A DNA stretch of 64,000 nt from Zygnema circumcarinatum SAG 698-1b (Eukaryota; Plantae; Zygnematophyceae): NCBI GenBank assembly GCA_037447605.1, contig CM074805.1, positions 2,823,361 to 2,887,360 on the forward strand, in the 5' to 3' direction. Made by a program: the position numbers and the translations under genes. This document shows, piece by piece, positions 3,701 through 57,442 of the stretch. Numbering within the stretch: the stretch's first letter is position 1; each line of letters begins with the position of its first letter. Below the pieces are notes generated by a model, which saw only the letters and a list, made by a program, of their open reading frames with translations, was not told the origin of the DNA and ran no database searches.

Positions 3701-6700
3701 GACGAGACTCTGTTGACCGCCTCCATTGGACGGGTACCCGATGAAGCGGGCCTGAGCCTTCCTGACAGAGCTGAAGAAGAGGCGAATGCAGCGGCCAACG
3801 TGTCGGCCAAAGAGAAGACTTCTTGTGACGAAGGTGCAGGATCTACAGGGTTGGAGAGGACCTCCACCGATCATCTGAAAATGGTGGATGGCCAGAAAGG
3901 ACTCCTTGGGAGAGGCAAGAAGCGCAAGTCTGGGAGCCTTAGTAGGGAAGAAGATACTGAGTTAAAGCGAAGGCACAGAGAAAGGAGAAGAGAAGAGCGG
4001 AGGCGCGATGATAAGAAGAGAGAAGAGAGACAGCTTGCTGAAGCTGCAAAAGAGAAGGGGCAGAGCTCAAGCCGAGGGAGAGAAACTGAGAAGGATGGAA
4101 AACGGGATCAGTGGAGTGGCAGCAGAGACAAGAAGTCAAGAAAGAATCGCAGTGATGGAACGAGCAAAGGCTTTTCGGGAATCAAGCATTTTGCGAGTGC
4201 TCTTTCCCCCCGGAAAAGTATAGAAACAGAGGCCCAAAAGAAAGCAACAGGCAGAGCGCACCTACTGCAGGCTGATGCTGATGCTGCACGAGTGGAAACC
4301 CACGAGAAGGAGACGTTGCCTGGGTTTGGCTCGTTCCGTGGTTGGGTGAAAGCGGTTCAGAAAGGAAAGGCCTGCAGGCCCATCGCCTCTGCAACTGGAG
4401 GATTTGGCCCTGAGAGTAATCGCAATAAGGGTGTCGGAGGAGATGCTGGAGGCAAACCACCAGGAAGAGAAGCTGAAGTCCCCTTGTCTCGTGGCCCGGC
4501 AGGTGCTGCTGACGTGGCACCAGTGCAATCCGTGTCTGGCGATAACCCTGACAATGCAGTTGGGGAAATTGCTTCAACGCTGGTGTCTTTAACAGAGGTT
4601 GTGCCTGCGTTGAGTTCACTGCAAGGACAACCAGAGAATCGTGTTGTTTCCGAAAGGATAGCGGGTGATGGACCAGATGTTGCCGCTGACGTAGGCGAGA
4701 GAGGGAGGAGAACCGAGGAGATTGAGGCCGACTTGGACGGAAATACATTGGAAAGAGAAGTGGAGCATTCTGGACCAGATGCACCTTTCCCTGCTTCTGC
4801 TGCTCCTCCACGTCGTGCGCCTCGTGTGCATTCAGAAGATGTGGTTGTTCCGGGAGTACAGAGTGGAAGCGGCGGCACTGACGAGCAGGCTTTGGGCGGC
4901 GGCGACTCGGAGGAGCATAGTGGGCATAGGGTCAACCATGAAGTTCAGGTCGTCCCGTCGACTTCCCGGCTTTGGTCAGAACAGGGCGAACAAATACGCC
5001 CCTCGGAAACAGAAGGGCAGTCTGGTGGTGGGGTTCGAACGGAACGCATGGATCGCGAGCTGGAGGTGCTTGCAGGGGCGATGGGAAGGCAGCAACAGCA
5101 GAGGGTCGTTTCACATTCACGACAAGCATGTAATGCAATCCATGACCGACAATCAAGCGGCGGTTGGGCTGCAGCAGCCGCCAACGGTTGGCAGGGCAGA
5201 AAGCAGGGCCTCCATCCTCAGTCTCCAGCCCTGGAGGAAGGTCCGAGTGGAACCACTGGGACCGGCACTATGGGCACAGCAACGGGTTCAAGAGTTCCCT
5301 CAGGTTCAGTGCCCGGCATTCCTGCAGCAAGCGGTGGTGGACCTACCGGGGGGGCTGCCTCTGGGAGCACCTCTGATGGCAGACTTCGGGATCGTTGGAT
5401 TGGTCGCTTCATTGGGTCTTCTGGGAAGGCCTTCAGAGGTGGCGGTTTGGAGCCTTTGGAAGGCATTGGACAGATTGGTGATAAGCAACATTTCTCGGGG
5501 AGCAATGGGCAAGGGCAGTCAATACTCGGGCAAGGGCCATTAACAGGCAGTGATAAGCTTCCTGAGGAATATGCAGCTCGAGGGAGGGGAAGCCCCGTGT
5601 ACAATTCTTACTTGCGTTACAAGCCTGATGTACAGAATATGTCAGACATGGAGAAGTTGGATTCGGCTCGTGCTGTTCGAATGGCTCAAGGCCTTGTTCA
5701 AGGTCCATTCTTGCGTGGTCCCTTGGGAAGGCCTTGTACAGAAGGCCTGATTGCTCACTTGCCAGGGCCAGTAGGTGGCTCCGGCAATCTTATTGGAACT
5801 ATGGGAAGTGTGGCATTTGCACAGAGGGAAACTGCAGATGATGGATCAGGAGAGGAATGCCTTATGGGACTCGGAGCTGCAGAGTATGCAGCAAGTATGG
5901 CAGCTTTGAGGGCTTGGCGGTTAGAGGGTTCTCGCAGTCGGGAAGAGATTCTCAAAGAGTACGATGTGGGGGGGAACACAATGGGGCAAATGTCGCTGGC
6001 AGGGTCGGCATACCTCGCTTTAAACACGCGGACCCCAGGACTGCCTTTGTCATTTGGACAAGGGCAGCAGTTGGTTTGTCCGTTTTGTAACTTACCCGGA
6101 CATCCCTTAGTTCTGTGCTCTGAGACGAGAGACTGTGAGTTGCCTGGTTTGGTGAAGCGAGCAGGTTCATTGAATGTGAATTCCCGGTTGAAATCCCTCA
6201 TCGGCTTGTCGTCAAGCCTGAGTACGGAAAGCCCTTCTCAACTTCCCTTACAAATGCTTCAAGAGGGCTCAAGGCGGGCACTTGAGAGGACTGAAATTGG
6301 ACAGGATTCTGCAAGCAGAGGGGAGGAGCTGCAAGAAGCTGCAAGAAAAGATACCGCTGCCAGTCAACCACTCTGCTTGCGTTGTTTGGAAGCGGGCCAT
6401 TGGGGTGTTGAATGTAGTCTCACGTGTTCTGAAGCAGCAGCTAAGGCACAAGACAAAGAACGTCTAATGGTACGGTTAAGGAGCACAAACCCTAGCGCTC
6501 GTGAAAAGAGTTTGCTAGGCAGCAATAACTTGTCTGTGGCTTCGGAGCAGAGAGGTAATAGTACAGCCAGTCGGGCTCTGTCGGCTGTATGTGAAAGCTG
6601 TAGTCTCCATGGTCTAGAAGAGGGGAGTTGTGTACATATGAAGGGGAGAGCAAGATACTCGGAGGTGGAAGGCTGGGCCGAAAAGAGCCCTTCGAAGAGC

Positions 6701-8085
6701 TCATCACCTGCAGAGCTCGTTGCAGGAGCTCAAGACAGGGGGTATCAAAAGAGCGTCAAACCAGGGTGTGAAAATGACTGGAGACAAGACGAAGAAGCCT
6801 CCAGGCAGAGTCGTGATGGACGATCCTTTGCTTGGGAGAGGAGGAGATTGAAGGACGATGTCCTGGAAGCGGATGGTAGCGCTGGCAAAAGTGTGGCACG
6901 AGAAAGGGAGGGGCAGCCCGCAGTGAAGCAGGAACAGGCGGCAAAGGTGGGAGGTAGCTTAGGAACGACTTGCGATGGAGCAGAACTGCCAAAGGGTGTA
7001 ACAGGAGAACCTGCTGATTTGTTGGAGGGTATTGAATCGATTCGCTTGCCAAGAAGAGACCTTCTCAAGTGAGTGGCATTCTAACCCACAATGTCGAGTG
7101 CGTGCTTACGTTTATTGTGCACATTTTCTGGCCGGCATGTGGATTCATCCATTTAAATCTGTGGTATTCATCCAAAGGCATGATGGATCAATGTGGATCC
7201 CTCGGTTCGTGGCAGCAGTGTTATGTTATGCCGGGCTGCCAGACCGTGATCAATGTTGCTGCCACATAAATGAGCTTGTCGAATCATCAAAAAATTGTGG
7301 GTGAAAATTTTGTGGGTGTGGGAGAATGTATATCTCTAAACCTATGAAGGACTGGCAATTGATTCGGGCATGTGCTGACTCCACTCTTATTGGTGGCGAA
7401 TGAATTTGCAGGTGGGCAGATTCACCTGAATTTGCTGAAAAAGTGAAGGGATTTTTTCTCCGCTTGCGGTTTGGAAAAAAGCAGGAGGTTCAGGGTGGCA
7501 CCGGCTATCGCATGGCTCGCTTAACAGGCAAGCGCCTTTGCTATCTCAGCACGCTTTTTCTGCATTTACTATGGGGGACTGGCGGTATCCCTGCTCTATT
7601 TTCTACCACGCATGATGTGAGATCGTAGAGGATGCCGAGCTCCTTCCAGTAGCATTCCCTAAAGTAGCCTTCGGTTCAATTTCAATGTTGATGCAGGCGC
7701 CTCCCGGAAGCAATCGGGAGGAGAGACAGTGCTCGCACTTGCAGTCGACTTTGGTGATGGGGAGTACACGGTCGATGGGCAGTATGTGTCCAATAAGCAG
7801 TTTACGGAGGTGGGATATCCATGTTCCCGAGTTTCAGTGGCGGAATGTGCTTTATTTTGCCGGTTTTCTTTGTGTAGCCAATGTCTTGGAAGTGAATGCA
7901 ATCAAGGATGGCAATGAGGGATTTCCCACGTTTCCGATCGCATGTTTCTTTCTAACTTGCGCGTGTTCCTTTGCCAGGTGGAGCTTTTGGAGTGGTGGAA
8001 AGGAGCATCCAGCAGGAAGCGGCTCATGATCACTCGGGACGAGATTGACGCCAAGTTCCAGGAGCGCCAAAGCTGGTTCCCATAA
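798..8085 (+). CDS. TZP: Tandem zinc-knuckle / Plus3-domain protein (TZP-like), multi-exon, 5' end not resolved
   Basis: Inferred exons 798-1401, 1881-7068, 7412-7527, 7697-7809, 7978-8085 join in phase. There are two CX2CX4HX4C knuckles (CPFCNLPGHPLVLC ~6077-6118; CLRCLEAGHWGVEC ~6374-6415). The spliced C-terminus IRLPRRDLLK|WADSPEFAEKVKGFFLRLRFGKKQEVQGGTGYRMARLT...QYVSNKQFTE|VELLEWWK...AKFQERQSWFP* resembles the Plus3 domain of plant TZP as I recall it. No start ATG was identified. Confidence 0.82.
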
Positions 8086-17754: not shown

Positions 17755-19540
17755 ATGGCGGGCGCTCGTCCGCGGAGCCCCCCGGGGGAGCTTTTGACCC
17801 CCGACTCGCCTACGGCGCCCCTCCTTGCAGATGGAGCTCCTCGCCGGATACCCTCCAGGTGAGGACCTTGCAGAAGGCGGAGCCATGGATTGGATGGGGA
17901 GGAAAGGAGGGATTCCACTATGCGTTTATTGTTGGTGCATGAGATAGTGGGTGGAAAAGCAGTAGGATAATAAAAAAAGACTGTTAATGCGGCGAAGGCT
18001 CATCCTGCAATGACCTCAGTGGTTAGTGTTTGGTAGCCTATTTAACATGTCAGCCGGTGTAGAAGTCTATCGCCAGTGACTTCTGGAGTTCTGAAAGACT
18101 CTATTTGGAACGTGAGGATTAGATTTTCCATTTTTTTGAATTTTCCAATTAAATATGAGTTGATTGAGTTGGGTCTGGTAAAGTTTCATCGAAGGTTCTG
18201 CTGCCTGAGAAGATGAGGAGCCTGGATTTCACTGACTATTCATTCACGAATGCTACAAAATCTGGAATCCAGATGTCGCACACTGTGTCCATTGCACATA
18301 GAAGTTTCCCAACGAAAACAAGGATTCTGAGGTTAAGACGAACACGCACTTAGGAAAACTTATGTCTTTCCTTGTTGAAAACACAGCTGCTTTTGTTGTC
18401 ATGTTGAGCAGCTAGTTGGAAGTCAACACAAGTCATGAACGTTTCTGGAAGCCCTGGTGTTTCCTTTTTGACTTACAATCTTTGCGTAGCGATTAGAGGC
18501 ATTCTTTAATGCTGTTCTTCTGGGGCGTGATGCAGAGCTGTAAAAATTCTACACATAAAGCATCCGCAACGGGGGGAGGCTTCTTTGGAGACAGAATCAA
18601 CTAGTCGACTATCTCGATTTCTTCAACGGGTGTCTTGGAAAGCAGCAGCAGAGGCCCTTTTTCCATGCATGCAATGGATCTCTGCATACAACTTTAAACG
18701 AGATTTTCAGGCAGACCTTCTTGCTGGCCTCACGGTCGGCGTCATGCTAGTTCCGCAGGTTAAGCAGCCCCATTCCCTGTTCCTTCAATTTAGTTCTATT
18801 CTTCTTTTTGGTTACTTTTGAACTAGAGTCTGACTACGGTTTTGTTATATCAAACGTTTCATTTTTTGTTGAGGCTTCTTGTCTTTTATCCAATCATATC
18901 TGATTGTTGCCCCCTCCTGGAAACTGTGTGAGCAGGCAATGTCTTATGCGAAACTCGCAGGAATGCCTCCAATATCTGGGCTTTGTAAGTCAAACCAAAT
19001 CCTGTCGAACTTTTACGAAATCTTGAATCGCTCAGATGTGTCCCTTCAACCTCCTCTCTTACATTCGTTCTATGCACAAACTCGGTTTATCAGTCGACGG
19101 TGTCAGCGCCCTTGGTGACCAAAATCGTACATAGTTGCAGCCTGGGTCTATGGACGTGTATGGCCGAACATCAGAAGTAAAACTCCTGGGTTTGATCGGC
19201 TGTAGAAAACCAGTGCTTCTCTTGCCATGGATCAAGACTGGAAAGCAGTCGCCCCTTGTCCTGCCTGTGCTTGAACCCGTCCCCGCCCCCTCCCCCCCCG
19301 CCTTGGCAGATCAGACTCCGCCTTCGTCCCCGTGGTGGGGTACGTCGTGTTCGGGACCTCCCGGCAGCTGGCAGTGGGCCCCGTGGCCCTCGTCTCCCTC
19401 CTCATGCGCGAGGGCATTGCGAGCGCGGCCCCGCAGGCGACGGACCCGGCGGACTATCAGAGCTTGGCACTCACTCTGTCGCTCCTTGTGGGCCTGCTGG
19501 AGGCCGCGATGGGGACTGCAAGGCACGCATCTCATTTCTC

Positions 19541-19574
<34 letters not shown>

Positions 19575-22500
19575 NNNNNNNNNNCCCCCCCCCCCCCCCC
19601 CCTCCCCTCCCCCTCTCCCTTTATGTGTCTGTGTGCACGCTCTTGCTTCCTTACATGTCTCTGTCCAGCTGAACCCTTCCTCCTTTGCGTCGGCCCCATT
19701 TGCTGTCCTCTGCAGGCTTGGCTTCCTGGTCCGCTTCCTGAGCCATTCCGTGGTATCCGGGTTCACCTCGGGCGCGGCCCTCCTGATTGGCCTGTCCGTG
19801 GTGCCGGAGTTCCTGGGCGTGCGGGCGGAGGGCAGCGCGCGGTTCTTCCCCCTCCTGTGGCGCCTTCTGCGCGCGGCGCAGGGCGGGGCCGTACGGACGG
19901 AGCCGCTGCTGCTGGGGGGGGCGGCGCTGGGCCTGCTGCTCGGGATGAAGGAGGGGGGCAGACGCTGCCCAAGGCTGCATTGGGTGCGAGCTGCCGGGCC
20001 TGTCACAGCGGTCGCATTGGGAACCATCATTGTCACGCTTTTCCAACCAAAAAATGTGAAGACGGTAAGCAGAGTGTTTCAAAGCCGGACGTCTTGGTCT
20101 TGCTCTTGCTCTTGCCTCCCTGTGGCCACTTGCCACCGTTCATCTCTTCGGTCTCTTGCCGCATCTTCTGTAAGGTTCTGGGGCTTTTGGATCGTCAGCC
20201 TGGCAGGTAGTCTCAAGTGCAGGTTAAGACGCAGTACTTACTGTCCACGTTCTGGAAGAGAGACACATGTAGACTGCACAATCCCTGTGAACGCCTGACT
20301 TGGAAACCAAAACCACGAATGCCATAAGTTCACCTGTCAAAACGTTGACCCAATCGTTTGCCACCTTGCCCCTTTGCAAACGCTCCTTAAGTCATCAGAT
20401 TTGGCTCCCTTGTGAGCCTTGCAGATAGGTGTCATTCCCCAGGGCCTCCCTCCCCTCAGTCTGCACTACCGCTGGGACGCTATTGCGTCTCTGCTTAAGC
20501 CCGCCGCTGTGATCATGGCGGTGGGCGTGTTGGAGTCCATGGGCATTGCGAGGGCGCTGGCGGCCCGCAACGGCTATGAGATTGACAGCAATCGTGAGCT
20601 TTTGGGGCTCGGACTCGCCAACATTCTCGGCTCCGCCTTTTCCGCCTTCCCCACTGCAGGTGAAGACTTTCTTTCGCCTTGGCCTTCATGGCGGTGTTGG
20701 CACGATGGCAACCCTTATATGCACAGGCTGGTGGTAGACCTCCACATAGCTGCTCTGTTGATGTTTGGAGGGGAGTGCGGGCACTTGCAGGTTCATTCTC
20801 TCGTTCCGCTGTGAGCAACGAGGCCGGCGCTCGCACAGGATTGGCTGGACTCGTCGCCGGAGGGGTCACTTTGGCCACTCTCCTCTTCCTCACGCCTCTG
20901 TTCATCCATGTTCCGCAGGTTGGTGTGAATATGTCCTCCTCAGCGTTTGCAAAAGCAGCTGCGGTACGCTGTCTGTGACGTATGCTGCAAGGAATGTGAG
21001 TTGAAGGTGGGAAGAAGCTGAGGGTGGCATAGTGGGTGCAGTGTGTTCTTGCAGCCATAGTCATCTCAGCAGTGATGGGACTTTTGGACTTTGAGGAGGC
21101 TGCATTCCTCTGGAGGGTAGAGCGGAAAGATTTCTGCCTTTGGTGTGCAGCCTTCTTGGGGACGCTCCTGTTCGGCATCGAAGTGGGCGTCCTCATTGCG
21201 GTGAGTGAGCTCCCTTGACGAGCGCAGCTATAATAAGCACATGGTCTCTGGGGGGAAGATGGAGCGCAAACAGCCGTGGCTGTTTGTTCCTTTCGTTCGA
21301 AACTGTGACATTGCATGTGCTGCTGGGCACAGGTGAGCCTCTCGCTTGTGTTTGTCATCCACGAGTCCGCCAATCCGCATATGGGTGAGCGGCGGGCTTC
21401 CTCTGTTAGACATGTTCTTTGGAGTGCATCTGTGCACTAAGAGAGAGCTATTGCGTTTCAAGCATCATACACACTAACTATACCTACTTTCTCCCTTTCT
21501 TGAAAGCAAGAAGGCCGGGCAGAATTTGCCCTTGTGCTTTGTTCCTTTGCTATGAGCCGCTGCTTGTCAACCCTTCTGAGTGCAAAGCATGGCGGGGATG
21601 TTCAGCGGTGCTAGGACGGCTTCCTGGGACCACTGTGTATCGCAATGTGGAGCAATATCAAGAGGCGCATACATATCCTGGCATGGTCGCTGTTCGTATT
21701 GATGCTCCCATGTATTTCGCGAACATAAACTTCATTAAAGAGAGGTATGAGAATTTAGATATTTAACTTGTTTGGAAACTTTGCTTGCCTGTTATTTTCG
21801 TGACTCTTTTGCCAATCATGGTGGAATCTCTCTCACCCAAGTCGAAGCTGGGGACCCTTGTTGCTTGGTTTTGCTGGCGAGTAAAAATGCTTGTTCCGTC
21901 TAGTTCACATATTTAGAGACCTTACATTTCCTTGTTTTTGCAAACGAGCTTGCCGTTCTGATATCTCTTGATCATTGATACGGCCGGCGGTTGACCGCCA
22001 GACTCCGAAAACAGGAGCTGATTTCCAACGGGACACAGACAGAGGCCGTTGCTGCAGAGCGGGTCCGCTTTGTCATTCTTGATATGACTCGTAAGTGGGC
22101 CATCATTCCTTACACATCCCCATCGTTTATCAAAAAACTTGACAAAAAAGTCATGGCATCGTTGAGCAACCTCTGCCTGATTCCTGTTTTGAGCACCCTC
22201 TTGCGTGACAGCTGTCATGTACGTCGACTCCACCGCCATCCACGCTTTGAAGGAGTTGCATGCAGAGTACACCGCTCGAGGGATACAGATGGCGCTCTCT
22301 AACCCTAATCTTCAGGTCATGAGAACGTTCGCACGTGCGGGGATTCCGGAACTCATTGGCCACAATTGGTACTTCGTGCGCGTGCACGATGCAGTGCAGG
22401 TGAGGATGCAGAGATTGGCCCTTAATCTAGGGGTCGACTCGTGCTCACCTCATAAACCTGTCTAATATTGTTTTTTAGTTTGGTGTGTGTGTGTGATACT

Positions 22501-28900: not shown

Positions 28901-31900
28901 GACTATCAGGTGACCTTGCACCTTACCGCAGCAGGACTGCATGTGTACATGGATTAAATAACATCATCGACAGCTTATATTCCACTCTTTGGTCGCCTGT
29001 CCAGCATAGTCAAACTGGCAGGACAACGAAAGAGTACTTGGCAGATAGCGAGTCTAGGTTTGGGGTTCTGGGGAACTGAACTTCTCTCCTTGTCTTTCCT
29101 TTCGCTTGTCTCCGTTTACCTACCGTTCGCTTCCTTTCAGGAAACCTGACGCTCCATTGGACAGTCGACGAGGATTATCCAAAGGACTCGACAACCCAAC
29201 CTCACATCATCACAACCTCAGGGATGAACAACAACCATTTTGCAAAATCCTCTCCTATCATTCCCTTCAAACTTTTGTAACCTCAATAAAGAACCACGAC
29301 AAGGGTAAGGGGGCAGGGGTTGCAACTCTGTAACGCAAGTCCTGTTGCCATTGTTTGTGGAGAATCTCAAAAGGTCAGATTCCCAAACCATGCTCCACAC
29401 CCGTTGAGTTCGCTCCTACCTGGCGATGATCGATTCTGCGAATGGCGTAAGCACGCCCATCGCTAGAGCTGATCCCTTTGAAGACGATCGATCGCACTCC
29501 AAACGCGCTTCTGCTCACCTCGTCCTGCGCGCTGAAATCCTCCAACGGGTACAGCATGTGGTAGTGCTGCACTGTGTCTGGAAGGTCGACCATATCCTGC
29601 TCAGGGTCAAGCTGCAAGTTCCCATCTCCTCCCCTTCCTCCCTGTCATCTGTTGACCACTCATTGGGAAAGCGTTTCTGGGCCTGACAACCAAAGTGGCA
29701 AACAAGCCTGAGATGCATTGCTTATGCCTGTGTGCTCAACCATGAGGTGGGTGATGGGCGAAACGGGATTCGACGAAAAACCTCCTTGGACCGTCAATTC
29801 AACACCTGGTCATAATCTTCACATTACTTGCAAAGCCCCATGATACCAATGCGCAAGGTTTGGGGCAGCAAGAAAGCAAATTGGCTTGGAATGGAAGGCT
29901 GGAGTTTCGCTGAGTGTACAAAACTTGAAGATGCAGCTACCTCTAACCTGAAACTGCAAATTTCACAACTTTGATTGAAACTTCAGACGTTTTTCCGAAA
30001 ATCAACATTAAGACTGCTGAAGTTTTCTCCAACAGTACAGCCTCTACCACCCTCATCCCTACATTCCACGTGTTCACACCTGTGCTTGGATGAGAGCGCT
30101 GCGTTGCAAAAGCTCCTTCCGCAAGTCCTCTGAGATAAATTTTGATGCCAACGGCATCCGACCAGGAGTACCTACAACATTCCCAGTCCTACCAATTGCA
30201 TCCCTTCTCACACCCCCTCCCCCTCCCCCATAATTTCCTACTGCGCCCATCATCTGTTGAACGCTTGCAGCACCCAGTCCTTGTCTGGGCCCAAAAAAAT
30301 AGGTTGCACCGCCGTGTGTTGCAGCGGCAACAACCGGCGTGGTAGCCAATGAAGGCCCCGGAGAGGTAGGCCTGTACAAGTTGTGGGGGTTCCCAGAGGA
30401 AAGCCTCTGCGAGTGACTCGACTGCAACTGTGTGCTGCTTTGCTGCAACGGGGGTGTGCCCTGCCGCTGTGGCATTTGCATCCGTTGATATGAATTCTGT
30501 TGGGCCTGTACCGGGCCCATGGGTGCTGAGTGGTGGGGGAGTTGATAGAAAGCCTGTGCCTGGATGTGCTTTTGATGGGCCAACTGCGTTTGCGCTAACG
30601 AAGATTGCATCATGTGAGCGTGTCTTGCTTGCTTTTGCCTCGGCGATTTGTCCCCTAGATCTTTTCCGGATGCATCGAATACGGCATCACTAACGCCCCC
30701 ACTAAAACCCTTCACATCTGTTGGCACAAACAACCCATCCTTCCCTACAATCGGTCCTGTGCCTTGCGGCTGCCCTGCCTCCGAACCCATCTGACTTTTC
30801 TGCAGCCCCGGTCTCTGTGGCTGGTTTGAACCCGCCACCTGACCACCAGAAATTCCTGGAGAGGTCCCGGGCCGAGAACTCATAATTCCCCCGGAAACCA
30901 CGAACCCATTCCCCACACGCAAACTTGAGCCAAACCTCCCTCGGGCATATCTCACAGCTGAGCCAGGAGGACCCCCCCCCCCCCTTCCAGCTCGCTCTCC
31001 CACACTACCCATGGCAGAGACCCCATCCGGAGGACGGAGGATGGGAAGCATCTGCCCTGACACCCCCACAGCAGAACCTGCTTGTGATTCAAGGGAATTT
31101 GTTCCTGCCTGAGGAGGAGACATAGATGTCATCCCTAACGATGGATCATCACCATCTGGCAATGCAAAAGACTGTGCTGACACCCCGCCATCAAGCTCCT
31201 TATAGGATGAAGAGAGCCCGCTTCCTGAGCTTCGCGATAGCCCCCCTCCTGCTGTCACTCTTGATCCTACTGCTGCTCCAACTCCCCCCTTTGGCCCTGA
31301 TCCCGGTGTCGGCACCAAAGCAGGTGTAGTGGGCCGAATTCCAGGAGCCAATCCACTGCCCACAACAGCTCGTCCTGGCAAAGACTGCGCTTGAGGTTGT
31401 TGCATAGTGACTTGCTGTCGATTACTAAAGGAGCTATATGTAACAGTGGGTCGTGGAGTGGTATGGAGGGAAGGGCCGGCAGAACTAGGAATAGCGGCAG
31501 CGGCTGAGGAAGGGGGTAGGGAGGGAGATGGCGCTCGGCCCGTCGCTGCCAACTGTTTGGACTTTGGCACGAAAGGGGGAGCATTGGCAGCAGCTGCTAC
31601 ACCGGGTGAGATTCCAGAAGGGGGCAATCCTGCATCAAGCATGCCATGTAACAAAGGAATTGGACAGCTAATGAGGGGAATCAGACAACACTCAATATAG
31701 CCAGTACGTTTTAGTTACTGTCGGTCCAAATCACAGGATCACCTTGACGAGAAACAATTGTTAAAAAAAAAAGGAAAAATGATCACTGGAAGTCTTTGAT
31801 TCGACACGATCTCAAAGTTGGTCTATACCACAGAACAGTCGTAGTTTGTTAGCCTATAGAGGTCCAAAAATGTTTGATGAGTCATTCGAATTGTGAGCAA

Positions 31901-43212: not shown

Positions 43213-43863
43213 CACGTGGCGCCATCGGGACCGCCCGCCTCCCGCCTGCCCACCCGAGGTGGTCCGGGCGGGCGATCTGCGCCTTGAATCGCCCGCCCGC
43301 CCGCGGCCCTCCAAAACAGCTGGCCGCCCGCCGCCACCGCTGACGTGGCCCCCGTGCGCGGCCCACGCTGTCCGCATCGCGCGTGCTTTTCCGCCGACGC
43401 GGCGGACCAATGGCGGCCGCGCGCGGATCCCAGCGGACGGCGCACAGCGCAAGCGCACGTGCCGCCGGGACGCGCTCCGCGGCCGCCCGCCCGCCAGGTC
43501 GGTCGGTCGGCCAAGGAGGGCGCCGCTCGTGCAAAAAGTTGACCGGCCCGATGCATGCTGCAACGCCCCGCCGATCGTGCCACGTGTGAGAGAACTCCAC
43601 TATTGGTCTGCCTCTCCGGGCAACTTCCGAAAAATACCTCCAAGCTGCCCGTAACCGAAAGGGCCTCGACCCCGCCCGCGGACTCGTCGGTGCCGCCTGC
43701 CCGCGCAGGGAAAGTTTTGGGCCTCAACAGCCAGCCCGCGCACGCGCGGTCCCGCGCGTCCGTGTCCCTGTCCCCCCCCGTCCGCGTCCCCGTCCGCGGG
43801 CGCGTCCGCGGGAGCACACGGAGCCGCCGTTGCGCGCACGTGGGCCGCCTCGCTCCGCACGTG
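43213..43863. promoter_or_regulatory. GC-rich upstream region of the TPR gene with repeated G-boxes
   Basis: CACGTG at 43213, 43456, 43581, 43837 and 43858, plus TGACGTGG at 43341. Confidence 0.5.
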
Positions 43864-44135
43864 CGAGTGGCGGCCCCGTTCCCACCGCAACGACGGGCGG
43901 ACGGGTCCCTCCCTCCCTCCCTCTCTCCCCGGCGGGCGGCTCCCAGAAGGTGGGACCCGGCGGCCGGGGGCCGTTCGCGCTGAATCTCGCCGCGTGGCGC
44001 GGAGATATTACGAGGGGGGGATCAGGGGTGGGGGCAGAAGCAGCAGGAAGCAGCAAGAGCAGGGCTAGGGTTGGGAGGAGGTGGAGGAGGGGCTGGAGGC
44101 AGGGGCAGGAGAGGCATGCGCGCACGCCAGTGAGG

Positions 44136-47100
44136 ATGTTGACCAAGAGTTCATCCATGTCGGCCCTTTCCTCGCTCGTGTCTTCCTCCGGAGAGGTGCG
44201 AGATTGGAGAATCAGCGATTTCTGCATAGAAGGACGGCAGGCTGCGCGGAGCAAACCAGCGAGGGCTTCCCTGGGCTCGCCCTTCTCTTCGCAATCGTCC
44301 ACGAAACCCGCTTTGGCGGAGTCGGCTTCCTCCCCTAAATGCAGGGATGGCGACTGCAGTGTCCACGGAGGCCTGGCGAGCCCGAGCCCTAGCGGCAGTA
44401 GCGGCAGCCATGGAGGGCTACGTTCTCGTGAGAGAGCGCTTTGGGATTTTGAAAACGATTTGGTCCCATGGCCCTACATCCGGCGCGCACAGTCAGAGAC
44501 AGATCTGCAGAATTTGGCCAAAAATGGGGGAATTGCAGCCAGGCTGATGTCCGATACTCTTGGCTGCATGGGGGGATGCCAGCAAGCCGCCGGGAGCACC
44601 GATTGCAGCTTAAAGGGATGGAGTTTGCCGTCCCCTACCAATTGTGATGTTGAGACTGGGAGGCACCATCGGCGTCGATGGGCTAGAAGGAAGTCTTTCT
44701 CGTCTTTTTCGAAGCGACTGCCTGAAGGGGATGTTGCAGAAGTGGAGGAAGATCAGACAACTCAGCAGAACTCGACTGGAAGACTTCTGAAATTGGCTTT
44801 ACCATGTGAAGTGAATGCAACTGGTTCAGCTGGACCGTCTTCTGTGCATGTAGGGGTGGCCCAAGAAGGTTGTTTTTCGTCTCGTTCTCATACCCGCTCG
44901 TTAACTCCTGAAGAACAGGAGGGGCTTTTTAGTCGGTTAGGTGTCAAGACAGGCATATCCTTTGCTAACTCCGCATTTGTCCAATCTCTACCTTCTCCAT
45001 CCTCTCTTCCCTTTTCAAGAGCAAATAGCAACCCTGTAGTTATTCATCCTGAAGCTGTGGAACGGCTCATCAGATCGTCAGAGATGCAGGATTTGGAGGT
45101 AGTTGCCTGTAAGTGCAGTCAGCAAGACTCGCGATCTTCCCACAATGTTTCCGGGTGCGCTTGTAGCTCAAGTACAGTCTATTGTTTCGTGAATGATAGT
45201 CAACAGGTCATGCGCTCTGTTAGCCAAAGCCCTTTAAACTGTGGCACCCAGACGAATGTAGTCGGCCATTCTGAAGATTTCTTCGGGTCACAACAGCTTT
45301 CTGGAGATGGTTTTGGGCCGGGGGGCTTTGGCGGAGGAGGGATGACTGGAGGGAAGGGAGGGAGGCGATGTGGAGGTGCCCCTCGTGATTGGGAAGAAAG
45401 CAGCCACGGCAACGCTAACTCCAGCTCCACAGATGCGTATTATCAGCAGGCGTTGGAGAAGGATCCGGGGCATCCGTTGCTCCTACGAAACTACGCTCGT
45501 TTCCTTTCTGAGGTGAGTGGCACTGTGAGGGACGTGTTTGCCATTGTGGATGCGGAATCTTCACGACTGCCAATGCTCGAGAGCAATGTAGGCAGCTTGA
45601 AGGAGATGAGATGTTCTAATGCCGGCAAACGTTGGTGTATGGTCTCATGTTTGATGGATTGTAAGTAGCTCTGAGTCTGCAGAGTGTCGCCTCGTTAGCA
45701 TTTTGCCTGTGTGTGAAGGATCGGGATTTTAATACACGTAGTATGTCTAGAATGTTGAACGCTGCATGGCCTTGAACTTGGTTTTGACCTTGTCAAGCAG
45801 ATCATCCTTGTGTATCTTTTCTCCTGGTAGGGAGCCTGCTTACAATTTCTTGATCAAAACCAAGAACTGCAAGTAGAACCTTGGCTTGCATGTTGGTAGT
45901 TCAATGGAGTGTGGGTTCGTTCCCGGTGAAAGATGATTGAACTTCTGAAGGTTCTTATGAGTTGTATGATTCAGAATCATGCTTGGATTGATCGATTACG
46001 GGCGCTGCCTGCTGTCCCTTGCGTTGTCGTTCTGCGTGTGCGGAACTACTTGTTCATTTTGAGCCTGCACCAGATTGGCTGCCGAAAATAGGAGTATTAA
46101 TGACCTGATCTGGTATTTCCTGGGAAGCGGTGAATAGTTTCTTGTGTGCTTTTCTTCCAAGGTGTCTGTTGACGACCTTTGTTGTAATTGCAGCTTTTAT
46201 GGTTCCATCGATGGCATTTTGGTTGGACAAAAGTAGCCTTCTCCTGTCTGCTATGTCTAGGAGTTTAGCAGCCTTGTCAGAGTCGATCCATGATGATAAT
46301 AGTATCAGCAATAGCAATCTTGCCTCAAGAGGGTAACATATATGAGAGAGCCTCGTCTTGGATGTGTTTCCGTTTCCATCCTGCATGTGTCCTCGTGAGG
46401 TCCTGTTCGACGGGTGTTTTTGCCTTTGGTGAATGCAATTGCTTCTGCTTGTGTCTGCATGAGTTGCAGAAAAAATGATCGATTGATTGAGTGAATGCAT
46501 AATGAACATATGGATGATGCATGAATGAGACAGCGCACTGGTCTCCATTGGTTGAGTGACACGATCGTTTTTTGCGATCTTTTGTGTTTCTTTCATAGAA
46601 TAATTTTCTTTAGTTCATGGACCTGATTCCTGGATCCTATTGAAGGCTATCCAGAATGTATCTAGGCTTGCTATGGCCTCGCAGACAGATTCGATTATTT
46701 AGACCCTTTCTATGCACTACGCAGTAGAACCGTTCATGACACCTCGTGACACCTCATGACACCCTCATGAAGTGTCGTGAGGTGTACTTTTCTACGCATG
46801 TGAACCTGAAGGCAGGGAGGAGTGGAAGAAGGGTGTTGGATGCTTTCAAATATGTGAAATGGTTCTACAAACAAAACTGTTGCCCTTTGCTGTTTGGTCA
46901 TTTAATGGCCTTATCTTGTCCAGGAAATAAGCTTGGTCTATCTGTTGGCTTTTGCATTGCAGGTGCAGCATGACCTAGTCAAGGCAGAGGAGTTTTACGA
47001 GCGTGCTATTTTGGCCAATCCGGGCGATGGAGAGGTTTTGGCGCAGTATGCGAAGCTCATATGGGAGGCGCACAATGACCATGAGAGAGCCAGCAGCTAC

Positions 47101-49459: not shown

Positions 49460-52400
49460 CTATGCTGGAATCGCTGAATTTAAAAAGTCGTCTGAAGTTT
49501 TCTGCATCATCGCCATGAACTCCTCAAAATCGATTTCGCCATTCTGCAGGCCACCGACCAGGAAAATGAAACATATATAAGATAAATAACCGGACAAGAC
49601 TTCAGCCATAGAGGGCTCGATCGCAGAAAACTTAAGGCTCGATCGCAGAAAACTAAGTCACGGAAAAGAGACGACCGCCTTACAAAAGTTATCTGCAATA
49701 GCCAATCCGTGCCGGTATGATTCACAAAAGACCTAACTGATGAGGTCGATCAAAGCAACTTGCCCCGATGTACTACGACAAGGTGCACCATCAAGAAGTG
49801 AGCACCCCCAGCATATGGGCTGGAAAGTGGTCAGACTACTCAGGTGAGGCCTATGTATGCAGCTTTTTCTTCATTGGAGCCCACCCATGGAGTTGAATTT
49901 ACGAACAAGCTTTGAAAACCACAACCATAACAGTATTCATGACCTCTGGACGAACTTCTGCCATCTCAAGGAGGTCCCGAGTTCGAGAAACTCTGACCGC
50001 ACATGAATGTGGTAAGTGTCTCTCTCCAAAGGATTATAACATTATGGACAATCAAAAAACTGTCTGCGAAAGTGTCACCCCTCACCCCGTCCACGTCTGC
50101 CATCCTGATCATTTGTTCAACTTCTCCTGACTCCAACTCATACTCGTCCTCCAATGCTTCTCGCAATTCTTGCAGAGTGATGTACCTGCACAAAGTCAAC
50201 AAAGAGATCTCATGATCACAATGATCAACAACGATATTCACTCTGCATACGCACCTCCCACAGACACAAACATGGACATGCATATTCCATGCCTTTTCAC
50301 TCCTTCCCTTACTCTAACAAATACGAACAGAGACTCTTAAGGAGAATTACATAAGCAACGCCATATCCATCTCTCGTCCGTAGCGCCAATAACTAAGCTC
50401 AAGATTACGCCTTCATCAGATATTTAGGATCAGGAGGTTATCCATGCTCCTCATGTACATGAAGGAATGCAAAAGCTGGGCATCCTATTCACATTCTGCA
50501 TAGAACGAGCTGTACCCATTGTCATCCGCATCGAAGTGATGGAAAGCCCGCGCCATATCTGTCACATTGTACGTTCTTTCAACGCTCAACATGCCAGCCA
50601 AGAACTCGTTATAATCGATGGAACCACCCTTATCCAAATCAAGCTGCGAGGGACATCACGAAACAGAAACTGCTATGTTGCAGTTAAAATGATGTATCTT
50701 CTCTTGACCATACTCCAGTGTTATGGATCCAAGGTCCAAGTAAAGTTTGACAGATTGTCATGTGCTGTTTATGATCCAAGTATGCTCAGCGTGCTTGATT
50801 TAGCATGCATTATCTGTTATGAGTTTAACTTAAGCATTTGAAGACTCTGTTCAGGCTGCACTGCAATCAGGTCCAAACTTGCTTTATTCCAGAGTGAAAA
50901 GGCCAATGCAGAATGTAATGAAGCAAACAAGGAGTGCTTACCACTTCTAGGAGCGTTTCGAGTTCAGTTTCAATCGTGGTCAACCCCACTTTCTCAAAGC
51001 CATCCCTGAGCTCGTGGTAGCTTAGGCTGCCGTCCTTATTTTTATCTAAGGCCTCAAACACGTCTTGAAGCTTTTTCATGTCTTTTTTCGGAAGCCGTTT
51101 TGCTATCACCTGCAACCTCAAACACGCGAAAGGTTAGTCTAGAGACCCAACAAGTACTCCTATCAGGGAAGACAATGCAAAAGGCTGAAACTCCTGAACT
51201 CCTTCTGCGTTAGAATACACAGAGATAGTGTTACTTGCCTGCTTAAAACAATACACTCTCTAAACTTTTGACTCCATACACCATCTCTTAGGCATAGACG
51301 TGAGTTGATTGTGACAAACACAACTCATTGCTGCCATTGTAAATCAGTTTGAGAGCACTGTTCTTACTAGAGAAAGATCACTTCACATGAGCAAGAAAAA
51401 CGAGTCTGTGCATGCATTAGGAAAAAAAATAGCCCTTTCGTGACGGAGACCTAAAAGTACAGGCCGCTACACTGACCGGGCGATTCCATGCCAAATGCTG
51501 ATATAGCATTGCAAAATTACTCTCACTTCTATCACCTGCTATTCAGAGTCGTATTCCATGAAACTAAAGCTCCACTATGCCGAAGTTGTAAAACATAATC
51601 TCACATATAATTGCACCTGAAGCCTGCGATTTGTAATATATGGCCATTGGAGATCATAGCAATGGAGAGAATACCGGTTATCGTAAGTGGTCAAAGCCAA
51701 CTCGTGGTTAGCCATTTCCAGAAATGTGGTGTCCACAACAAATGCAGTTAATTTTTCGTCGTGCATGGACACAAAATCTAGATAATGGGTTCCTGCAAAT
51801 GCCTGTCCCTTTAATAGCTGGACAAAGGAAATGCACCTGGCAGGCCACTCGCTTCATTTTATTCACCGACAAAATCTTTTGCAGCCCTTGGAAAGTTTCT
51901 GGGTCGAGTGGTGTTTCCACCGCTATTGCAGCTTCCTTCAGCCACTCGTGCTCTGCGCAAATGGTGTCAGGCCTAGGCCTAGAAGTGAGCACAACGCAAG
52001 TGGCTAGACACACTTGGAAAGCCCAAGCAAGTAACAATGGAAGTGCTATGCCTCCCATCAGTTGCTACAACAAGTTGCAAGAGAAGGAACTCTGCTGCAA
52101 GGCCACCTTTTAATTACATCCAAATAAACGATAAATTAGGTGTGTTAAAGAAACTAAGAGTCAATGCTCATTCTGATGACTCCGAAGCTGTCGTTCTTCA
52201 ATAAGAGTGGCAGAACCATTTTTTTCTGAAAGTCATGTCTCTGTACACACTAGATACAACATTCCCAAAACTTGAATCCACCATCAGCAGCAGTGGCTTG
52301 TCTATACCATGGCGCAAAAAAGGCTTTAAGATAATTTCTTCTAAGCAAAAAAATAAGCTGTTCAAGAGAAGGTCGTTAGCTCCTCACCCAGTGCTTGCTT

Positions 52401-55400
52401 GGCTGTAATCCGCTTTTGCGGATTTCGACTAAGCAAACTTCTTGTCAGATTTTTTCCTTCTTCTGATACCTTTGACCATGCATTCGAATTAAAGTTGATT
52501 GAGCCTTCGAGGATATGCTGGAAAATATCACAGTCACTATCTGCAGACGGCCCTTAAACGGCCAATTACACCCCAGTGGGCCAGTCAGTGGGTTGAGAAA
52601 TAAGAAGGCTCGAAGGCACCTTTTCTTGCTTGTCCCAAACCTGTGTGCAATGGCCAAACTTGTGTCACAATGCCAAAATCAATTAATGCAAGAGCATTAC
52701 CTCTTGTTCAAATTGGTGGCTAATGGAAGCACGGTACATGCTGACAAAAAACTGTAATGCACTATTACGGTGATTTCTCCCTGACTATCAACCCTTTAAA
52801 AAAGCCTTTCTGACTTTGTAAATACTCGTAAACCGATGCTTACAATGAGATGGATTATTGTATATCTCCCATTCTGCAGCCAAAACCAACTAAACGTCCC
52901 TTTTTCCAGTTTCCTCTAAAACGAAACCCACTAGTCCCCATACACCATGGCCTTCCCACCCCACTTCTCCATTCCCCTCGCCTCTCTCCCACCCACATTC
53001 AATATTCTACAATGCACTCTCTTGCGTATCCTACCCACGTGGACCCCACATTTTTCCTTGTTTCATGTTTTCTCTCTCTCATCAGTTACTACTCAAGAGA
53101 AGAGAACAGAAGAGGCCAATGACACATATGCATCTTATTGCTTGATTTCAATGAAAAAGAGGGGGGTTCAAAGCTTGCCTGCTGCAAAGGGGGGTTCTCC
53201 GGAAAGTAGAATGTGAAGAAAAACGCCACAGCTCCAATTGTCAGCTTCTGAGCTGTACTTTCGATACAAGACCTGCAACACGTGAACAGGGCATTCATGA
53301 GTTGAGCCATAACGATGACATGAGTGCACCTGCAGAGCCAAAACATCATCATCCGGGCCTCACCGCATGCAGACAACGCTTCTCAACTCATCCAAAGTTA
53401 GTCCGGAAAAACCTTTCTTAACAACTTTGAACATGTCAAGAACACTGACCTCTGGTGCCATGTACGTGAGAGAACCAACAAAGTCTTTGAATGTCTCACC
53501 TGCGAACCACAAGTCAAGAACGACGTTAGCACCATAAGGATATAATATGCCTTCAGAATGCCCAAAGCAGCATGCAAAGTACAGAAAAAGACAGACATTT
53601 TCTTCAGCGTTGAAATGTGCATGCACTTTACGCGGGAGGAAACAAGAAAAAATGCCAGCAAACAACTGGGTAGCACATGTGAGGGTATGCTTTATCTACG
53701 CTTTGAAAAAAACGTTTGAGCACAGTCTTCTTAAGAAAAAAAAAAATAATCATCGAACTGAGAAAGCTAATCTACTGGTGCTGCTAATGTAGTCGGCCCG
53801 TACGGCCTGTCAGTGGTCATAAAACCTTGGATATAGAAATTCGTCATTTCATATTTGAAGCCATTTGTATGTATGAATAATATTTCTATGAATCGTTGAA
53901 ACCCCTTAAAAAGGTGAAAAGGCAAAAGATATTTACAGTTCGAAAAAAAAATGCTTGAAAATCAGAACCGATTTTTTAAGAAGAAAATGTGAACTACTCC
54001 ACTCTAATATCTGAGCACTTTCCCAGCGTGCAGACAGAAAGGAAAACTGTTTTAATCCAGCCAAATGCTCGCTATAAATTTTTTTATACCAGAATTCAAA
54101 AGTCAAGTGCGCTGACTCGAGTGCACAACAAAACCGTTGGCGTAAACACCAACCGGAAGGAATGGTAGCATGTTCTAAAAATGTTTCTACAGTACACCTT
54201 TTGCCCATTCAATGAGTTTCTTGCTTTCAGTAATTATGCCTTCACCTCCTACACAACGAATTTTGAGGCTGCTGACAATCATAACGAAGTCAGAATGTAC
54301 TGGTAATTAATGTAGCAGGGCCGCCAATGGTTGCAGCTTTAAACAAGCAATCAGCTCCTCCAGTTTCTGTGCTATCTTTCCGCATAGAACTTGGACAATA
54401 TTCCGGACGAAGCCCTGTGAATTCCTCTTTAAATTGGGCTAGTTTCTAGTTCCTCCACGGTCAAGACTCCTATGGGAGGCAGCAGTTGGGACACGGCCCA
54501 ATCACAGCTAATACTACACCTTTAAAGGACAACAGAACGATTCTTCTTTTGCTTCCTGTCTCTTTCACCTCTTCTCCTCACTTCACTCCTATGCTCCTCG
54601 CCAGACCAACACATTCCCCCCCCACCACCCCCATCTGTCCTTTTTCCGCCCTCTCGTACCTACAACCTCTCCATCCCTTTTTGCCTCACTTTCGAAATCT
54701 CACATCCCCTCCTCCCATTCACCCTCACTCTTCTCACGCACCTCACTATTTTTAATTCCTCACCTTCGACTCCCTCGCAAACGAAACAGGCTCGGTTCCA
54801 GTCGGGTTTGAAATACTTGATCTGTCTACATGTCAAAATAAGCACTATTGGCAAACAGGCAATTGAGGATATACAAAGGCTGAGCTGATCACTCACCGGG
54901 TTTGAAAAACACGGCTTCACTAAAATCGACAAACTTTAAGACAGCATCATGTTTTTTGCTGCTGTACCGAAAGTTCTCCAACTTAATATTCCTGCAAATT
55001 GTCCCATTCCACAAGAGGGTGAGCCTCCTTTGAGCTTGAGACAGCTCCAAGAACTGCCGTCCAGCCTGAACAACTATGTTGCAAAAAAGCTTCCTGTGTC
55101 GTTACAATAATATAGAAACTATGATTTCAAATTATTTTCTTTTCTGTCGCAAATCATAATTTCTTCCAAGGACGAGATGGCGTGCCCATTTTCCCAAGAC
55201 AAGTTGTATCAATGGCTGGAAAGCCCAGCTACAAGTATCTGCCAAACGGGTAAAAAGGACTTTCAGCAGTCACACAACTTAAGCAATGATGCATGACACG
55301 CAGAGGGGCATCGATACTTTTCCAAATTCGAGAATCTCCTTAGCATTCACTTGCCTGAGCATTATTCCGAGAAAGTGACAGGTCTTCACAACTTCCATGA

Positions 55401-56395
55401 TAGACCGAAATATAGAGGCAGCTTGTCTTTCTGTATATGTCCCCCTGCCTACAATCAAGTCCAGAAGCTCATCTCCGGAACACCATTCCAGAATGAGATG
55501 CACGTGATTGCTGTCTTCATACGTTGCTAGGAGGTGCACACAGTTTGCTTGCCCTGCACAGCAAGCAATCTCCGCAGTGATTGAAATGGTTGCATTCCTC
55601 TTCAGCACCCCAATTACCACTTCCAGTATTCAGTTCTGCAGTAGAGTTGAATTGCAAGCATCATTCGCCCCGCATTACAGGACCGCTCCTGCAGGACTGA
55701 AATGCCGCCAGCTAAAGACTCAGAAACTCAGCGAAAAAACAGACTAGAACATGACGGAAATCTATGTAGAAACAAAGACAACGCAGAATAAAGCAAGCCG
55801 AAGGATGCTGCCTGAATCAATAAGTTGGATGATAGCGCAAAACCCAAAAGGCGGAAAAAGAACAAATCATTTCCAAAAGGAAGAATTACAAACACGTGCG
55901 CTGTTTGAAAAAGGGAGAAAGCGACGGCGGACTGTCCAGCTCCTCACCTGTTAAGCAATGCATTATGGCAATTTCTGTTTTCAGCGCGTCCACGTCCTTC
56001 GCCACAAGCAGCTCCTTCTTTGATACGCTCTTGCAGAGCACTCGTTCCGAAGTCCTTCTGTCCATCGCGCTGTGCACAGATCCAAACTTGCATTTTCCAA
56101 ACTTGCGGCCGACCAGATAGTCCTCATGCACGTCCCTGTGGCCCTGCCCTAAAATGTCGGCGATCATAGTCCGTCTGTCCACCTTCTTCCTCTCCTTCCG
56201 AGGCTCTGGAGCTCCTAAGCGACTCATACTCTCCTCCTGCCTTGGCAGGGACTCCGAAAACGACACCGACCTCTTATTGGACGCCTCTTTCGATGTCGCC
56301 AATGCCTTCTTTTCTTGGAAGTAGGAGTCCAGTACTGGCAGCTGCCATCCTGTGAGGAAGGCGAACATGGAGCTTCCTGCCGCCTGCGTAGCCAT
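49460..56395 (-). CDS. CDPK-architecture protein (kinase fold + junction + 4 EF-hands) with degenerate catalytic motifs; predicted pseudokinase
   Basis: Eleven exons from ATG 56395 to TAG 49460. Kinase subdomains CKSVSK, TEIAIM, HLILEWCSGDEL, GSLTYMAPE, EADNWSCGV, RITAKQALEHEWL; junction LDPETFQGLQKILSVNKMKRVACQVIA; EF loops DKNKDGSLSYHE, DLDKGGSIDYNE, DADDNGYITLQE, DVDGNGEIDFEE. The catalytic loop reads LRNIKLEN and DFG reads DFS. Confidence 0.92.
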
Positions 56396-56410
56396 GGCTT
56401 CCCCGCCACC

Positions 56411-56575
56411 TCCTCTCCCTCTCCCTCTCCCTCTCCCTCTCCTCTCCCTCTCCCTCTCCCTCTCCCTCCCTCCTCTCCCTCTCCCTCTCCCTCTCCCTCT
56501 CCCTCTCCCTTCTCCCTCTCCCTTCTCCCTCTCCCTCTCCCTTCTCCCTCTCCCTCGTCTCTCTCCCTCTCTCTC
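56411..56575. repeat. (CTCTCC)n / (GGAGAG)n microsatellite directly upstream of the CDPK-like ATG
   Basis: About 165 bp of ctctcc units with minor variants, ~15 bp from the ATG at 56395. Confidence 0.9.
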
Positions 56576-57442
56576 CGCCTCCGCCGTCCAAAGCCCTTCC
56601 AGCGTCCGTACCCAACGGAGTTTAAGAGGATGTACGGCTTTGTCCGGCGTCCCCTGTCCGTACGTCCGCGATGGAAAGGCCACCGCGCGATCGCCTCGTC
56701 GTCCCGCGAGGAATCGCCGTTGATCTCCAGAAGAGCCAGGTTTAACCAGGCGGCCGCGGCTGGATCCACCACGCGGCTGATTGCCAAATCGATTTGGGAG
56801 CCTCTGATTGGCGGGGTTTACAGGTCCACCTAGTGGACCCGTGACTCAGGCCGCCGGCCGGAGACAACTTTTTGGTCGCTAAGATTCCGCCTGCCAGCTG
56901 GCGTGCCAGATGACCAATCGCCACTGAGTTGGCCCACCAGGTACTCTCCAATCCAGAAGTCGTACCTCCATATCCGGCGGCCCCCCATCCACGAGGTACC
57001 GAGTCAGTGCTGAAGTCCGCGCCCCTGGCCCCGGAGCGCGGTGGAAGATCCGCGACGGCCAGCGACTGACAGCCCCGACAAGTGCTGGAGCGTACGGTCA
57101 AAACAACGTTACGCTGTTCTATTGCAGTTCTGCGTCTTAATCGAAATCTGTCGCGGCACGGAGCGCCGTTTGTCGTTCCAGGCCGGATCCACTCCTAGGC
57201 CTATCGTAGGGGGTACGGACGATACGGCTTTGGCCCTGAACCGCCCAGCGCCGTCAGTCCGATTGATTCGTACGGTACCCTTTGTCGACTCGGGGGCCGA
57301 TTGTCAACGGCCGATTGGATTGACCAAAAATCAACGTTTATGATTGGCAATTGAAGCGCGTACCGTACGGCCTCGCGGCATTGACCACCATTCTTGGATT
57401 TTTGTAATTTGAAGGAAAATTGTTTTGATCGACGGGGACTCC

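Follow-up and report, generated by a model that had tools for sequence, protein, structure and literature searches.

Can a calcium-dependent protein kinase (CDPK) whose active site has been dismantled still be a working protein, and if so, in what capacity? This question is raised by a gene on the minus strand of a 64,000-nucleotide (nt) stretch of contig CM074805.1 from the zygnematophyte alga Zygnema circumcarinatum SAG 698-1b; the whole stretch is referred to as the window, and gene positions are window positions. A first-pass annotation, made from the letters alone, had described the gene as a Ca2+-sensing CDPK pseudokinase with intact EF-hands and a catalytic Asp replaced by Asn. According to the analysis presented here, with a probability of about 0.68, the locus belongs to an old and conserved clade of pseudokinases that arose from CDPKs, here in a streptophyte-type green alga, and encodes a Ca2+ sensor that is non-catalytic or barely catalytic; it is not a dying gene.

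Reconstruction of the gene from the raw sequence (Table 1) yields a coding sequence of 1635 nt for 544 amino acids (aa) plus the TAG codon, with no internal stop or frameshift, in agreement with the 11 uninterrupted exons proposed earlier. Eight of the ten introns are of the GT-AG type; the donors of introns 2 and 5 are GC, lie in a strong AG/GCAAG context and are the sole in-frame options. The competing GT donor of intron 2 at 55350 was rejected, since it reads GIMLRQEY followed by an immediate stop, just as had been noted of the other possible donor. With the exons scanned separately, Pfam assigns Pkinase to exons 1, 2 and 6 and EF-hand families to exons 8-11. A tblastn search of the spliced product against the window recovers each exon and finds the gene in single copy there. 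The ATG at 56395 is the earliest in-frame ATG downstream of an upstream stop. Directly upstream of it lies a ~190-nt microsatellite made up of imperfect (GGGAGA)n/(TCTCCC)n repeats (window 56402-56590), presumed to be 5' untranslated region (UTR) or promoter, through which the frame is open and which contains no ATG.

The catalytic loop of the encoded protein reads G-I-M-L215-R216-N217-I-K-L-E-N, with LRN in place of HRD; the GC-AG intron that splits the Arg codon, the Asn codon behind it and the resulting loop were thus all recovered as first described. The same applies to DFS for DFG and to the glycine-rich loop (G-loop) GKCKFG. Also in line with that description, the β3 Lys (K122), the αC Glu (E141), the catalytic-loop residues K219 and N222, A262-P-E264 and the autoinhibitory junction are kept. 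Under the usual sequence definition of a pseudokinase (loss of the VAIK Lys, the HRD Asp or the DFG Asp) the protein is a pseudokinase, because the HRD Asp has become Asn217, while Lys122 and Asp238 are retained. It is nevertheless a CAMK-type kinase by similarity, being 38-43% identical to CDPKs of plants and algae in the kinase and EF-hand regions, and it has the C-terminal calmodulin-like domain with four EF-hands and, directly after the kinase domain, a predicted autoinhibitory junction that characterize CDPKs. What it lacks is the competent active site of HRD Asp, DFG and GxGxxG, having LRN, DFS and GKCKFG in their place. As read from these motifs, the protein is a CDPK by descent and architecture and not by enzymology, and it is predicted to have lost catalysis.

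An exhaustive HMMER search with window exon 1 through 1.84 billion cluster representatives gave 151 matches, among which a single one runs from the extreme N-terminus and is the one full-length relative recovered. This 531-aa protein, P0001, is encoded by a 2044-nt Logan contig from SRA run SRR8128905 and comes from a second organism. Its open reading frame (ORF) is uninterrupted and intronless and is flanked by a 140-nt 5' UTR with in-frame stops before the ATG and by a 300-nt 3' UTR, and the contig is therefore a transcript. Identity between the window protein and P0001 amounts to 42%, and their alignment is free of gaps over ~450 residues, from residue ~84 as far as the C-terminus, across all ten splice junctions. 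Since P0001 derives from mRNA, this gap-free alignment validates all ten junctions, those with the GC donors included. Both proteins have the same architecture, the same N-terminal motif, the same three degenerate sites and four EF-hands. In P0001 the corresponding motifs are S-K-F-K-F-G, V-L-C-K, L-R-S-L-K-L-E-S, D-L-S and Y-M-A-P-E. Where the window protein has Asn in place of the HRD Asp, P0001 has Ser (codon AGT); P0001 has also lost the catalytic-loop Asn (KLES), carries Phe and not Cys in its G-loop, and lacks the C-terminal tail. In a collection of 195 CAMK/CDPK proteins, none but the window protein and P0001 is missing both the Asp of HRD and the Gly of DFG.

These observations bear on the suspicion that the Asn is only apparent, produced by misassembly or by faulty splice prediction, and that the true transcript codes for a normal HRD/DFG kinase. 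Two GC-AG introns within one gene are unusually many, a feature that could feed such a suspicion. An artefact is nevertheless nearly excluded, as at least 21 canonical residues are replaced and not one base, the GC donors have a strong consensus and no in-frame competitor, and an independent mRNA matches collinearly across the junctions, one of the intron positions recurring in a further genomic contig described below (L002). Moreover, canonical CDPK queries against the introns of the window gene revealed no hidden canonical catalytic-loop exon.

In order to compare the two proteins with their canonical relatives, 119 alignment columns with an invariance of 93% or more across 15 canonical CDPKs were taken as reference. 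The window protein keeps 90 of these and P0001 keeps 86. Columns lost in both proteins number 21, compared with about 8 expected under independent loss, and at 8 of the 21 the replacement is identical (A120L, K128E, F180L, H215L, P220L, L224R, G240S and S242A). Identity between the two proteins is highest, at 59%, in the stretch from the catalytic loop to DFG (aa 210-243), compared with 53% in EF-hands 3-4, 30% in the N-terminus and 24% in the junction. The residues that do differ within the pair include position 217 (Asn/Ser), position 222 (Asn/Ser) and, in the G-loop, G100/Ser and C102/Phe, as expected if catalytic geometry is no longer constrained. As to the earlier question whether LRN and DFS are conserved in orthologs, conservation concerns the absence of the catalytic Asp (P0001 has LRS and DLS), and not the Asn itself, with N222 and G100 differing as well.

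At 127 of the 219 residues that are identical in the window protein and P0001 the codons are different. The LWL85 method gives ~0.45 nonsynonymous (dN) and ~2.3 synonymous (dS) substitutions per site and a ratio of ~0.19, which is quoted only in the sense that dN is much smaller than dS. Because dS is saturated, the NG86 and YN00 methods fail and codon-model tests are impossible for this pair, so that of the predicted dN/dS below 1 the inequality dN << dS stands, by LWL85, and a reliable ratio does not. Differing codons together with saturated dS indicate that conservation of the amino acids has been selected.

Maximum-likelihood trees place the window protein and P0001 as sisters, with values of 100 and 99 in the Shimodaira-Hasegawa-like approximate likelihood ratio test (SH-aLRT). 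The stem of the pair is 0.6-0.8 long and its terminal branches measure 0.8-1.2 substitutions per site, compared with shorter branches in canonical CDPKs. The pair falls among archaeplastid CDPKs (SH-aLRT 87), outside the land-plant clades of the set, with deep branches poorly supported; no group IV CDPK or CRK was seen in this set, and its land-plant subgroups are not labelled. Most simply read, the shared losses mean that the common ancestor of the two genes already had a dismantled catalytic centre, and that the protein, its remodelled cleft included, has been held by purifying selection since then. The losses before the divergence would comprise both the Asp and the His of HRD, the Gly of DFG and the middle Gly of the G-loop, with further drift at these sites thereafter.

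Long terminal branches could also belong to a lineage-specific duplicate turning into a pseudogene, with a kinase domain that decays neutrally and an ORF that is intact only for now. This alternative also draws on the finding that a 15-billion-protein collection holds no annotated or identical protein and on the restriction of the window gene to genomic sequence. It is disfavoured, and we consider it quite improbable, as the same degenerate state occurs in a transcribed full-length homolog at 42% identity, not one insertion or deletion has accumulated over 450 residues, and all ten introns have consensus sites. Furthermore, 90 of the 119 canonical invariant residues and all EF-hand ligands are kept, and the degenerate region is the best-conserved segment of all. 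The earlier opinion that the gene is under selection and not decaying is therefore borne out by P0001, a full-length protein of the same domain order with intact EF loops and the same three degenerate motifs.

Further members of the clade were sought by several routes. A word-indexed search with whole P0001 returned canonical CDPKs only and no further clade member, and in the one with P0001 residues 1-270 the only clade member returned was P0001 itself. The window protein is absent from the two protein collections searched. Look-alikes of P0001 1-270 in the ESM Atlas are generic kinases only, and a metagenome scan with the back-translated motif K-L-E-x-F-R-Y-x-S-K-K gave six matches, all of them chance matches without kinase context. 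The word 'plant' in the first description is appropriate in the sense of a streptophyte, zygnematophyte alga and not in that of a land plant: no land-plant member was found in searches that are not exhaustive for divergent members, so that for land plants absence is no more than suggested.

A partial CDPK-like gene from another organism (L002:2341-3729; Logan genomic contig, SRR9302961) may be a doubtful third, earlier-branching member. It has the G-loop G-R-E-I-R-K-I-P-L-G, H-R-D-L-S-P-E-N with the catalytic-loop Lys changed to Ser, and E-F-E for DFG. Its introns are ~60 nt long, and one of them lies at the same AG/G position and in the same phase within the HRD Arg codon as intron 2 of the window gene. 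In the tree L002 joins the window protein and P0001 at SH-aLRT 94, which is a weak grouping in which long-branch attraction is possible. Separately, two ENA metagenome scaffolds (L003:1622-2536 and L004:192-1106) carry CDPK-like exons 1-2 with the G-loop G-K-D-Q-F-G, in which the middle Gly is Asp, and V-I-V-K for A-C-K; these contigs stop at G-V-T-H-R, before the catalytic loop.

The regulatory half of the window protein presents a different picture from its cleft. Its EF loops (aa 407-419, 443-455, 479-491 and 514-526) all fit a PROSITE-type EF-hand loop pattern, as do all four loops of P0001, and the window protein retains all EF ligands; the four near-canonical loops noticed at first sight are thus present, with a Gly at loop position 5 in EF2. 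The autoinhibitory junction (aa ~351-392) aligns without gaps to canonical CDPK junctions and keeps the core N-K-[LM]-K-[KR] along with the flanking hydrophobic positions. Judged by these motifs, the protein would respond to Ca2+ and act in a non-catalytic role.

At the N-terminus, the window protein starts with MATQAAGSSMFAFLTGW and P0001 with MPSVFSFLTGW. The F-A-F-L-T-G-W motif of the former has its counterpart in F-S-F-L-T-G-W of the latter (aa 5-11, L001:153-173), and both proteins have a basic patch K-V-D-R-[RK]-T ahead of the kinase domain. The MGxC signal for myristoylation and palmitoylation is common, though not universal, among CDPKs. An MG(N)C acylation start is found in neither of the two proteins, compared with an MG start in 11 of 12 canonical CDPKs inspected, and as the window protein has no Gly2 it has no N-myristoylation signal.

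The solved structures nearest to P0001 by sequence are full-length CDPKs (9vhu, E 2.5e-114; 4mvf, 3lij and TgCDPK1 entries). An AlphaFold2 model of P0001 has a mean predicted local distance difference test score (pLDDT) of 80, with values above 90 in the kinase core and residues 1-70 predicted to be disordered, and the top 50 Foldseek matches of this model are again full-length CDPKs. Canonical CDPKs such as 9vhu, 3lij and 3ku2/3hx4 have the same domain order as the window protein, namely N-terminus, kinase, junction and four EF-hands. The window protein differs from them in LRN, DFS and GKCKFG, in FxFLTGW instead of MG(N)C and in a much higher evolutionary rate.

In canonical CDPKs, Ca2+ bound to the calmodulin-like domain pulls the junction from the kinase cleft, as seen in TgCDPK1 (3ku2, inactive; 3hx4, Ca2+-bound). 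Since the window protein has lost the catalytic base but retains its EF-hands and the core of the junction, a Ca2+-gated binding switch is proposed for it. Ca2+ on the EF-hands would still drive the CDPK-type rearrangement in which the junction leaves the cleft, and the output would be the Ca2+-dependent exposure of a binding surface instead of phosphotransfer. This surface would be formed by the dead cleft, the floor of which (R-x-x-K-L-E-x-F-R-Y-x-S-K-K) is derived, conserved and rich in Arg and Lys; its derived basic residues R224 and S-K-K are common to the window protein and P0001. The cleft could bind substrates or partners without turnover, and the protein might act as a Ca2+-gated adaptor, a substrate trap or an allosteric partner of active kinases, for example of the genome's own CDPKs. 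The part of a scaffold, decoy or dominant-negative regulator that the first-pass annotation had in mind is likewise a prediction from the motifs. FxFLTGW in the disordered N-terminus is a candidate docking motif that probably takes the place of membrane anchoring.

Retention of K122, E141, K219 and D238 in both proteins also fits residual or atypical catalysis, and this is the point at which a low-activity or atypical kinase has to be weighed. Such a protein would bind ATP and phosphorylate itself or a dedicated substrate in a non-canonical manner, as a slow or specialised Ca2+-dependent kinase. In addition to the β3 Lys, the αC Glu, the catalytic-loop Lys and the DFG Asp, the activation segment is of the same length in both proteins and its APE is intact. 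Precedents are HER3, in which Asn occupies the place of the HRD Asp, and CASK, which has no DFG Asp. The latter, which also turned up among the distant matches of P0001, is a nucleotide-binding CAMK-group 'pseudokinase' with retained atypical activity (PMC13727655), and the Arabidopsis pseudokinase ILK1 is reported to have confirmed protein kinase activity (PMC9403797). Against an atypical kinase, the catalytic-base position is not conserved within the pair (Asn versus Ser), P0001 has Ser for the Mg-ligand Asn222, both proteins have Leu for the HRD His, and the G-loop reads G-K-C-K-F-G in one and S-K-F-K-F-G in the other. We regard an atypical kinase as unlikely, although as likelier than a pseudogene or an artefact.

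Several further points weigh against a Ca2+-sensing pseudokinase clade as the description of this locus. Transcription is shown for P0001, while the window gene is known from genomic sequence alone. The clade comprises two full members and a doubtful third, and its age and range are accordingly poorly bounded. With 24% identity of the junction within the pair, autoinhibition could be altered, and the G-loop differences (Cys versus Phe at the middle Gly, G100 versus Ser) leave ATP binding ambiguous.

Among CAMK-group proteins of animals, CaMKv and Tribbles are pseudokinases or atypical kinases. Together with CASK they resemble the window protein in having a CAMK-type fold, in having lost canonical catalytic residues and in acting mainly through binding. 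They are unlike it in that they sense Ca2+ via separate calmodulin or not at all, in their unrelated origins and in the motifs that were lost; CASK, for example, lost the DFG Asp (GFG) yet keeps HRD. The CDPK-related CRKs of land plants are likewise CDPK-derived, and have kept an active kinase with degenerate EF-hands. They are thus the mirror image of the window protein, in which the EF-hands are kept and the kinase is degenerate, each having arisen from a CDPK in which one functional half degenerated.

Closest in kind are predictions from the kinome of the ciliate Stentor coeruleus, in which 42 of 308 CDPKs are predicted pseudokinases (10.1101/168187). As in the CDPK-derived window protein, these carry substitutions at the VAIK Lys, the HRD Asp or the DFG Asp, and they indicate that the CDPK family can spawn pseudokinases. 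They differ in belonging to another eukaryotic supergroup and to a massive family expansion, and the passages of that study consulted mention neither a conserved clade nor the state of the EF-hands nor conservation between species. The literature searched gave no account of a CDPK pseudokinase from plants or streptophyte algae. The first-pass annotation was not aware of this type in plant calcium signalling; within the literature searched, this can be upheld for the green lineage, and outside it the ciliate predictions are a precedent.

The Ca2+ decoders of the green lineage that are known to us are either non-enzymatic relays (CaM/CML, CBL) or active kinases (CDPK, CCaMK), and to our knowledge non-catalytic functions of CDPKs have hardly been explored. 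A conserved CDPK without catalysis but with four EF-hands would represent a natural experiment that separates the Ca2+ switch from phosphotransfer, situated in algae near the origin of land plants, and would offer a handle on what the CDPK scaffold does besides phosphorylation. Going further, it is conceivable, as a tentative proposal, that this ancient streptophyte-algal pseudokinase clade constitutes a new class of Ca2+ decoder, in which release of the junction exposes the remodelled dead cleft for capturing CDPK substrates or for docking to or regulating active kinases or phosphatases. If this were true, a 'sensor-responder' would have been turned into a single-chain 'sensor-relay'. The finding is no fundamental surprise, given that kinomes commonly contain pseudokinases and that a ciliate is already predicted to have some of the CDPK family.

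Table 1. Coordinates of the CDPK-derived gene and its sequence features in the window
Feature	Position	Strand	Description
Whole gene	49460..56395	-	11 exons, 10 introns; 544-aa protein of CDPK architecture, spliced and translated from raw sequence
Start codon ATG; stop codon TAG	56395-56393; 49462-49460	-	
Exon 1	55948..56395	-	Variable N-terminus, G-loop, β3 Lys, αC Glu; Pkinase profile positions 2-55
N-terminal motif F-A-F-L-T-G-W	56345..56365	-	aa 11-17; P0001 counterpart F-S-F-L-T-G-W
Degenerate glycine-rich loop G100-K-C-K-F-G105	56081..56098	-	Canonical form GxGxxG
β3 Lys K122 (V-L-C-K)	56030..56032	-	Kept, also in P0001
αC Glu E141	55973..55975	-	Kept
Exon 2	55355..55553	-	Kinase subdomains IV-VIa; ends G-I-M-L215-R(AG/); Pkinase E 1e-10
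Intron 2	54992..55354	-	GC-AG; donor AG/GCAAGT, acceptor TTGCAG/G; splits Arg216 codon (AG/G)
Exon 3	54897..54991	-	Degenerate catalytic loop and Mg-binding loop, N-I-K-L-E-N-F-R-Y-S-S-K-K-H-D-A-V-L-K-F-V-D-F-S-E-A-V
Asn217 codon AAT	54988..54990	-	Position of the HRD catalytic Asp; first codon after the Arg codon split by intron 2
D238-F239-S240 (GAT-TTT-AGT)	54919..54927	-	In place of DFG
Exon 4	53450..53499	-	End of activation segment, G-S-L-T-Y-M-A-P-E
Exon 5	53179..53272	-	Junction collinear with P0001
Intron 5	52541..53178	-	Second GC-AG intron; donor CAG/GCAAGC
Exon 6	52388..52540	-	Kinase subdomains X-XI; Pkinase
Exon 7	51837..51952	-	End of kinase domain and autoinhibitory junction (N-K-M-K-R-V-A-C-Q)
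Exon 8	50942..51109	-	EF-hand 1; Pfam EF-hand_6/5/1/7 above cut-off
EF-hand 1 loop D407-L419	51008..51046	-	Exon 8
Exon 9	50516..50643	-	EF-hand 2 and start of EF-hand 3
EF-hand 2 loop	50602..50640	-	Exon 9; Gly at loop position 5
Exon 10	50086..50185	-	Remainder of EF-hand 3, start of EF-hand 4
Exon 11	49460..49543	-	Remainder of EF-hand 4, C-terminal tail, TAG

Elsewhere in the window, a 1723-codon open frame on the plus strand (1901-7069), with a GTG start according to the mechanical ORF list, matches no Pfam family at E <= 0.001, and the same is true of a 526-aa ORF on the minus strand (30077-31654) and a 612-aa ORF on the plus strand (43830-45665). For a plus-strand ORF at 19135-20295, a homolog search restricted to its sulfate-permease part gave no match; the ORF contains a Sulfate_transp domain (PF00916, E 3.5e-20) and probably belongs, as one exon, to a sulfate permease gene.

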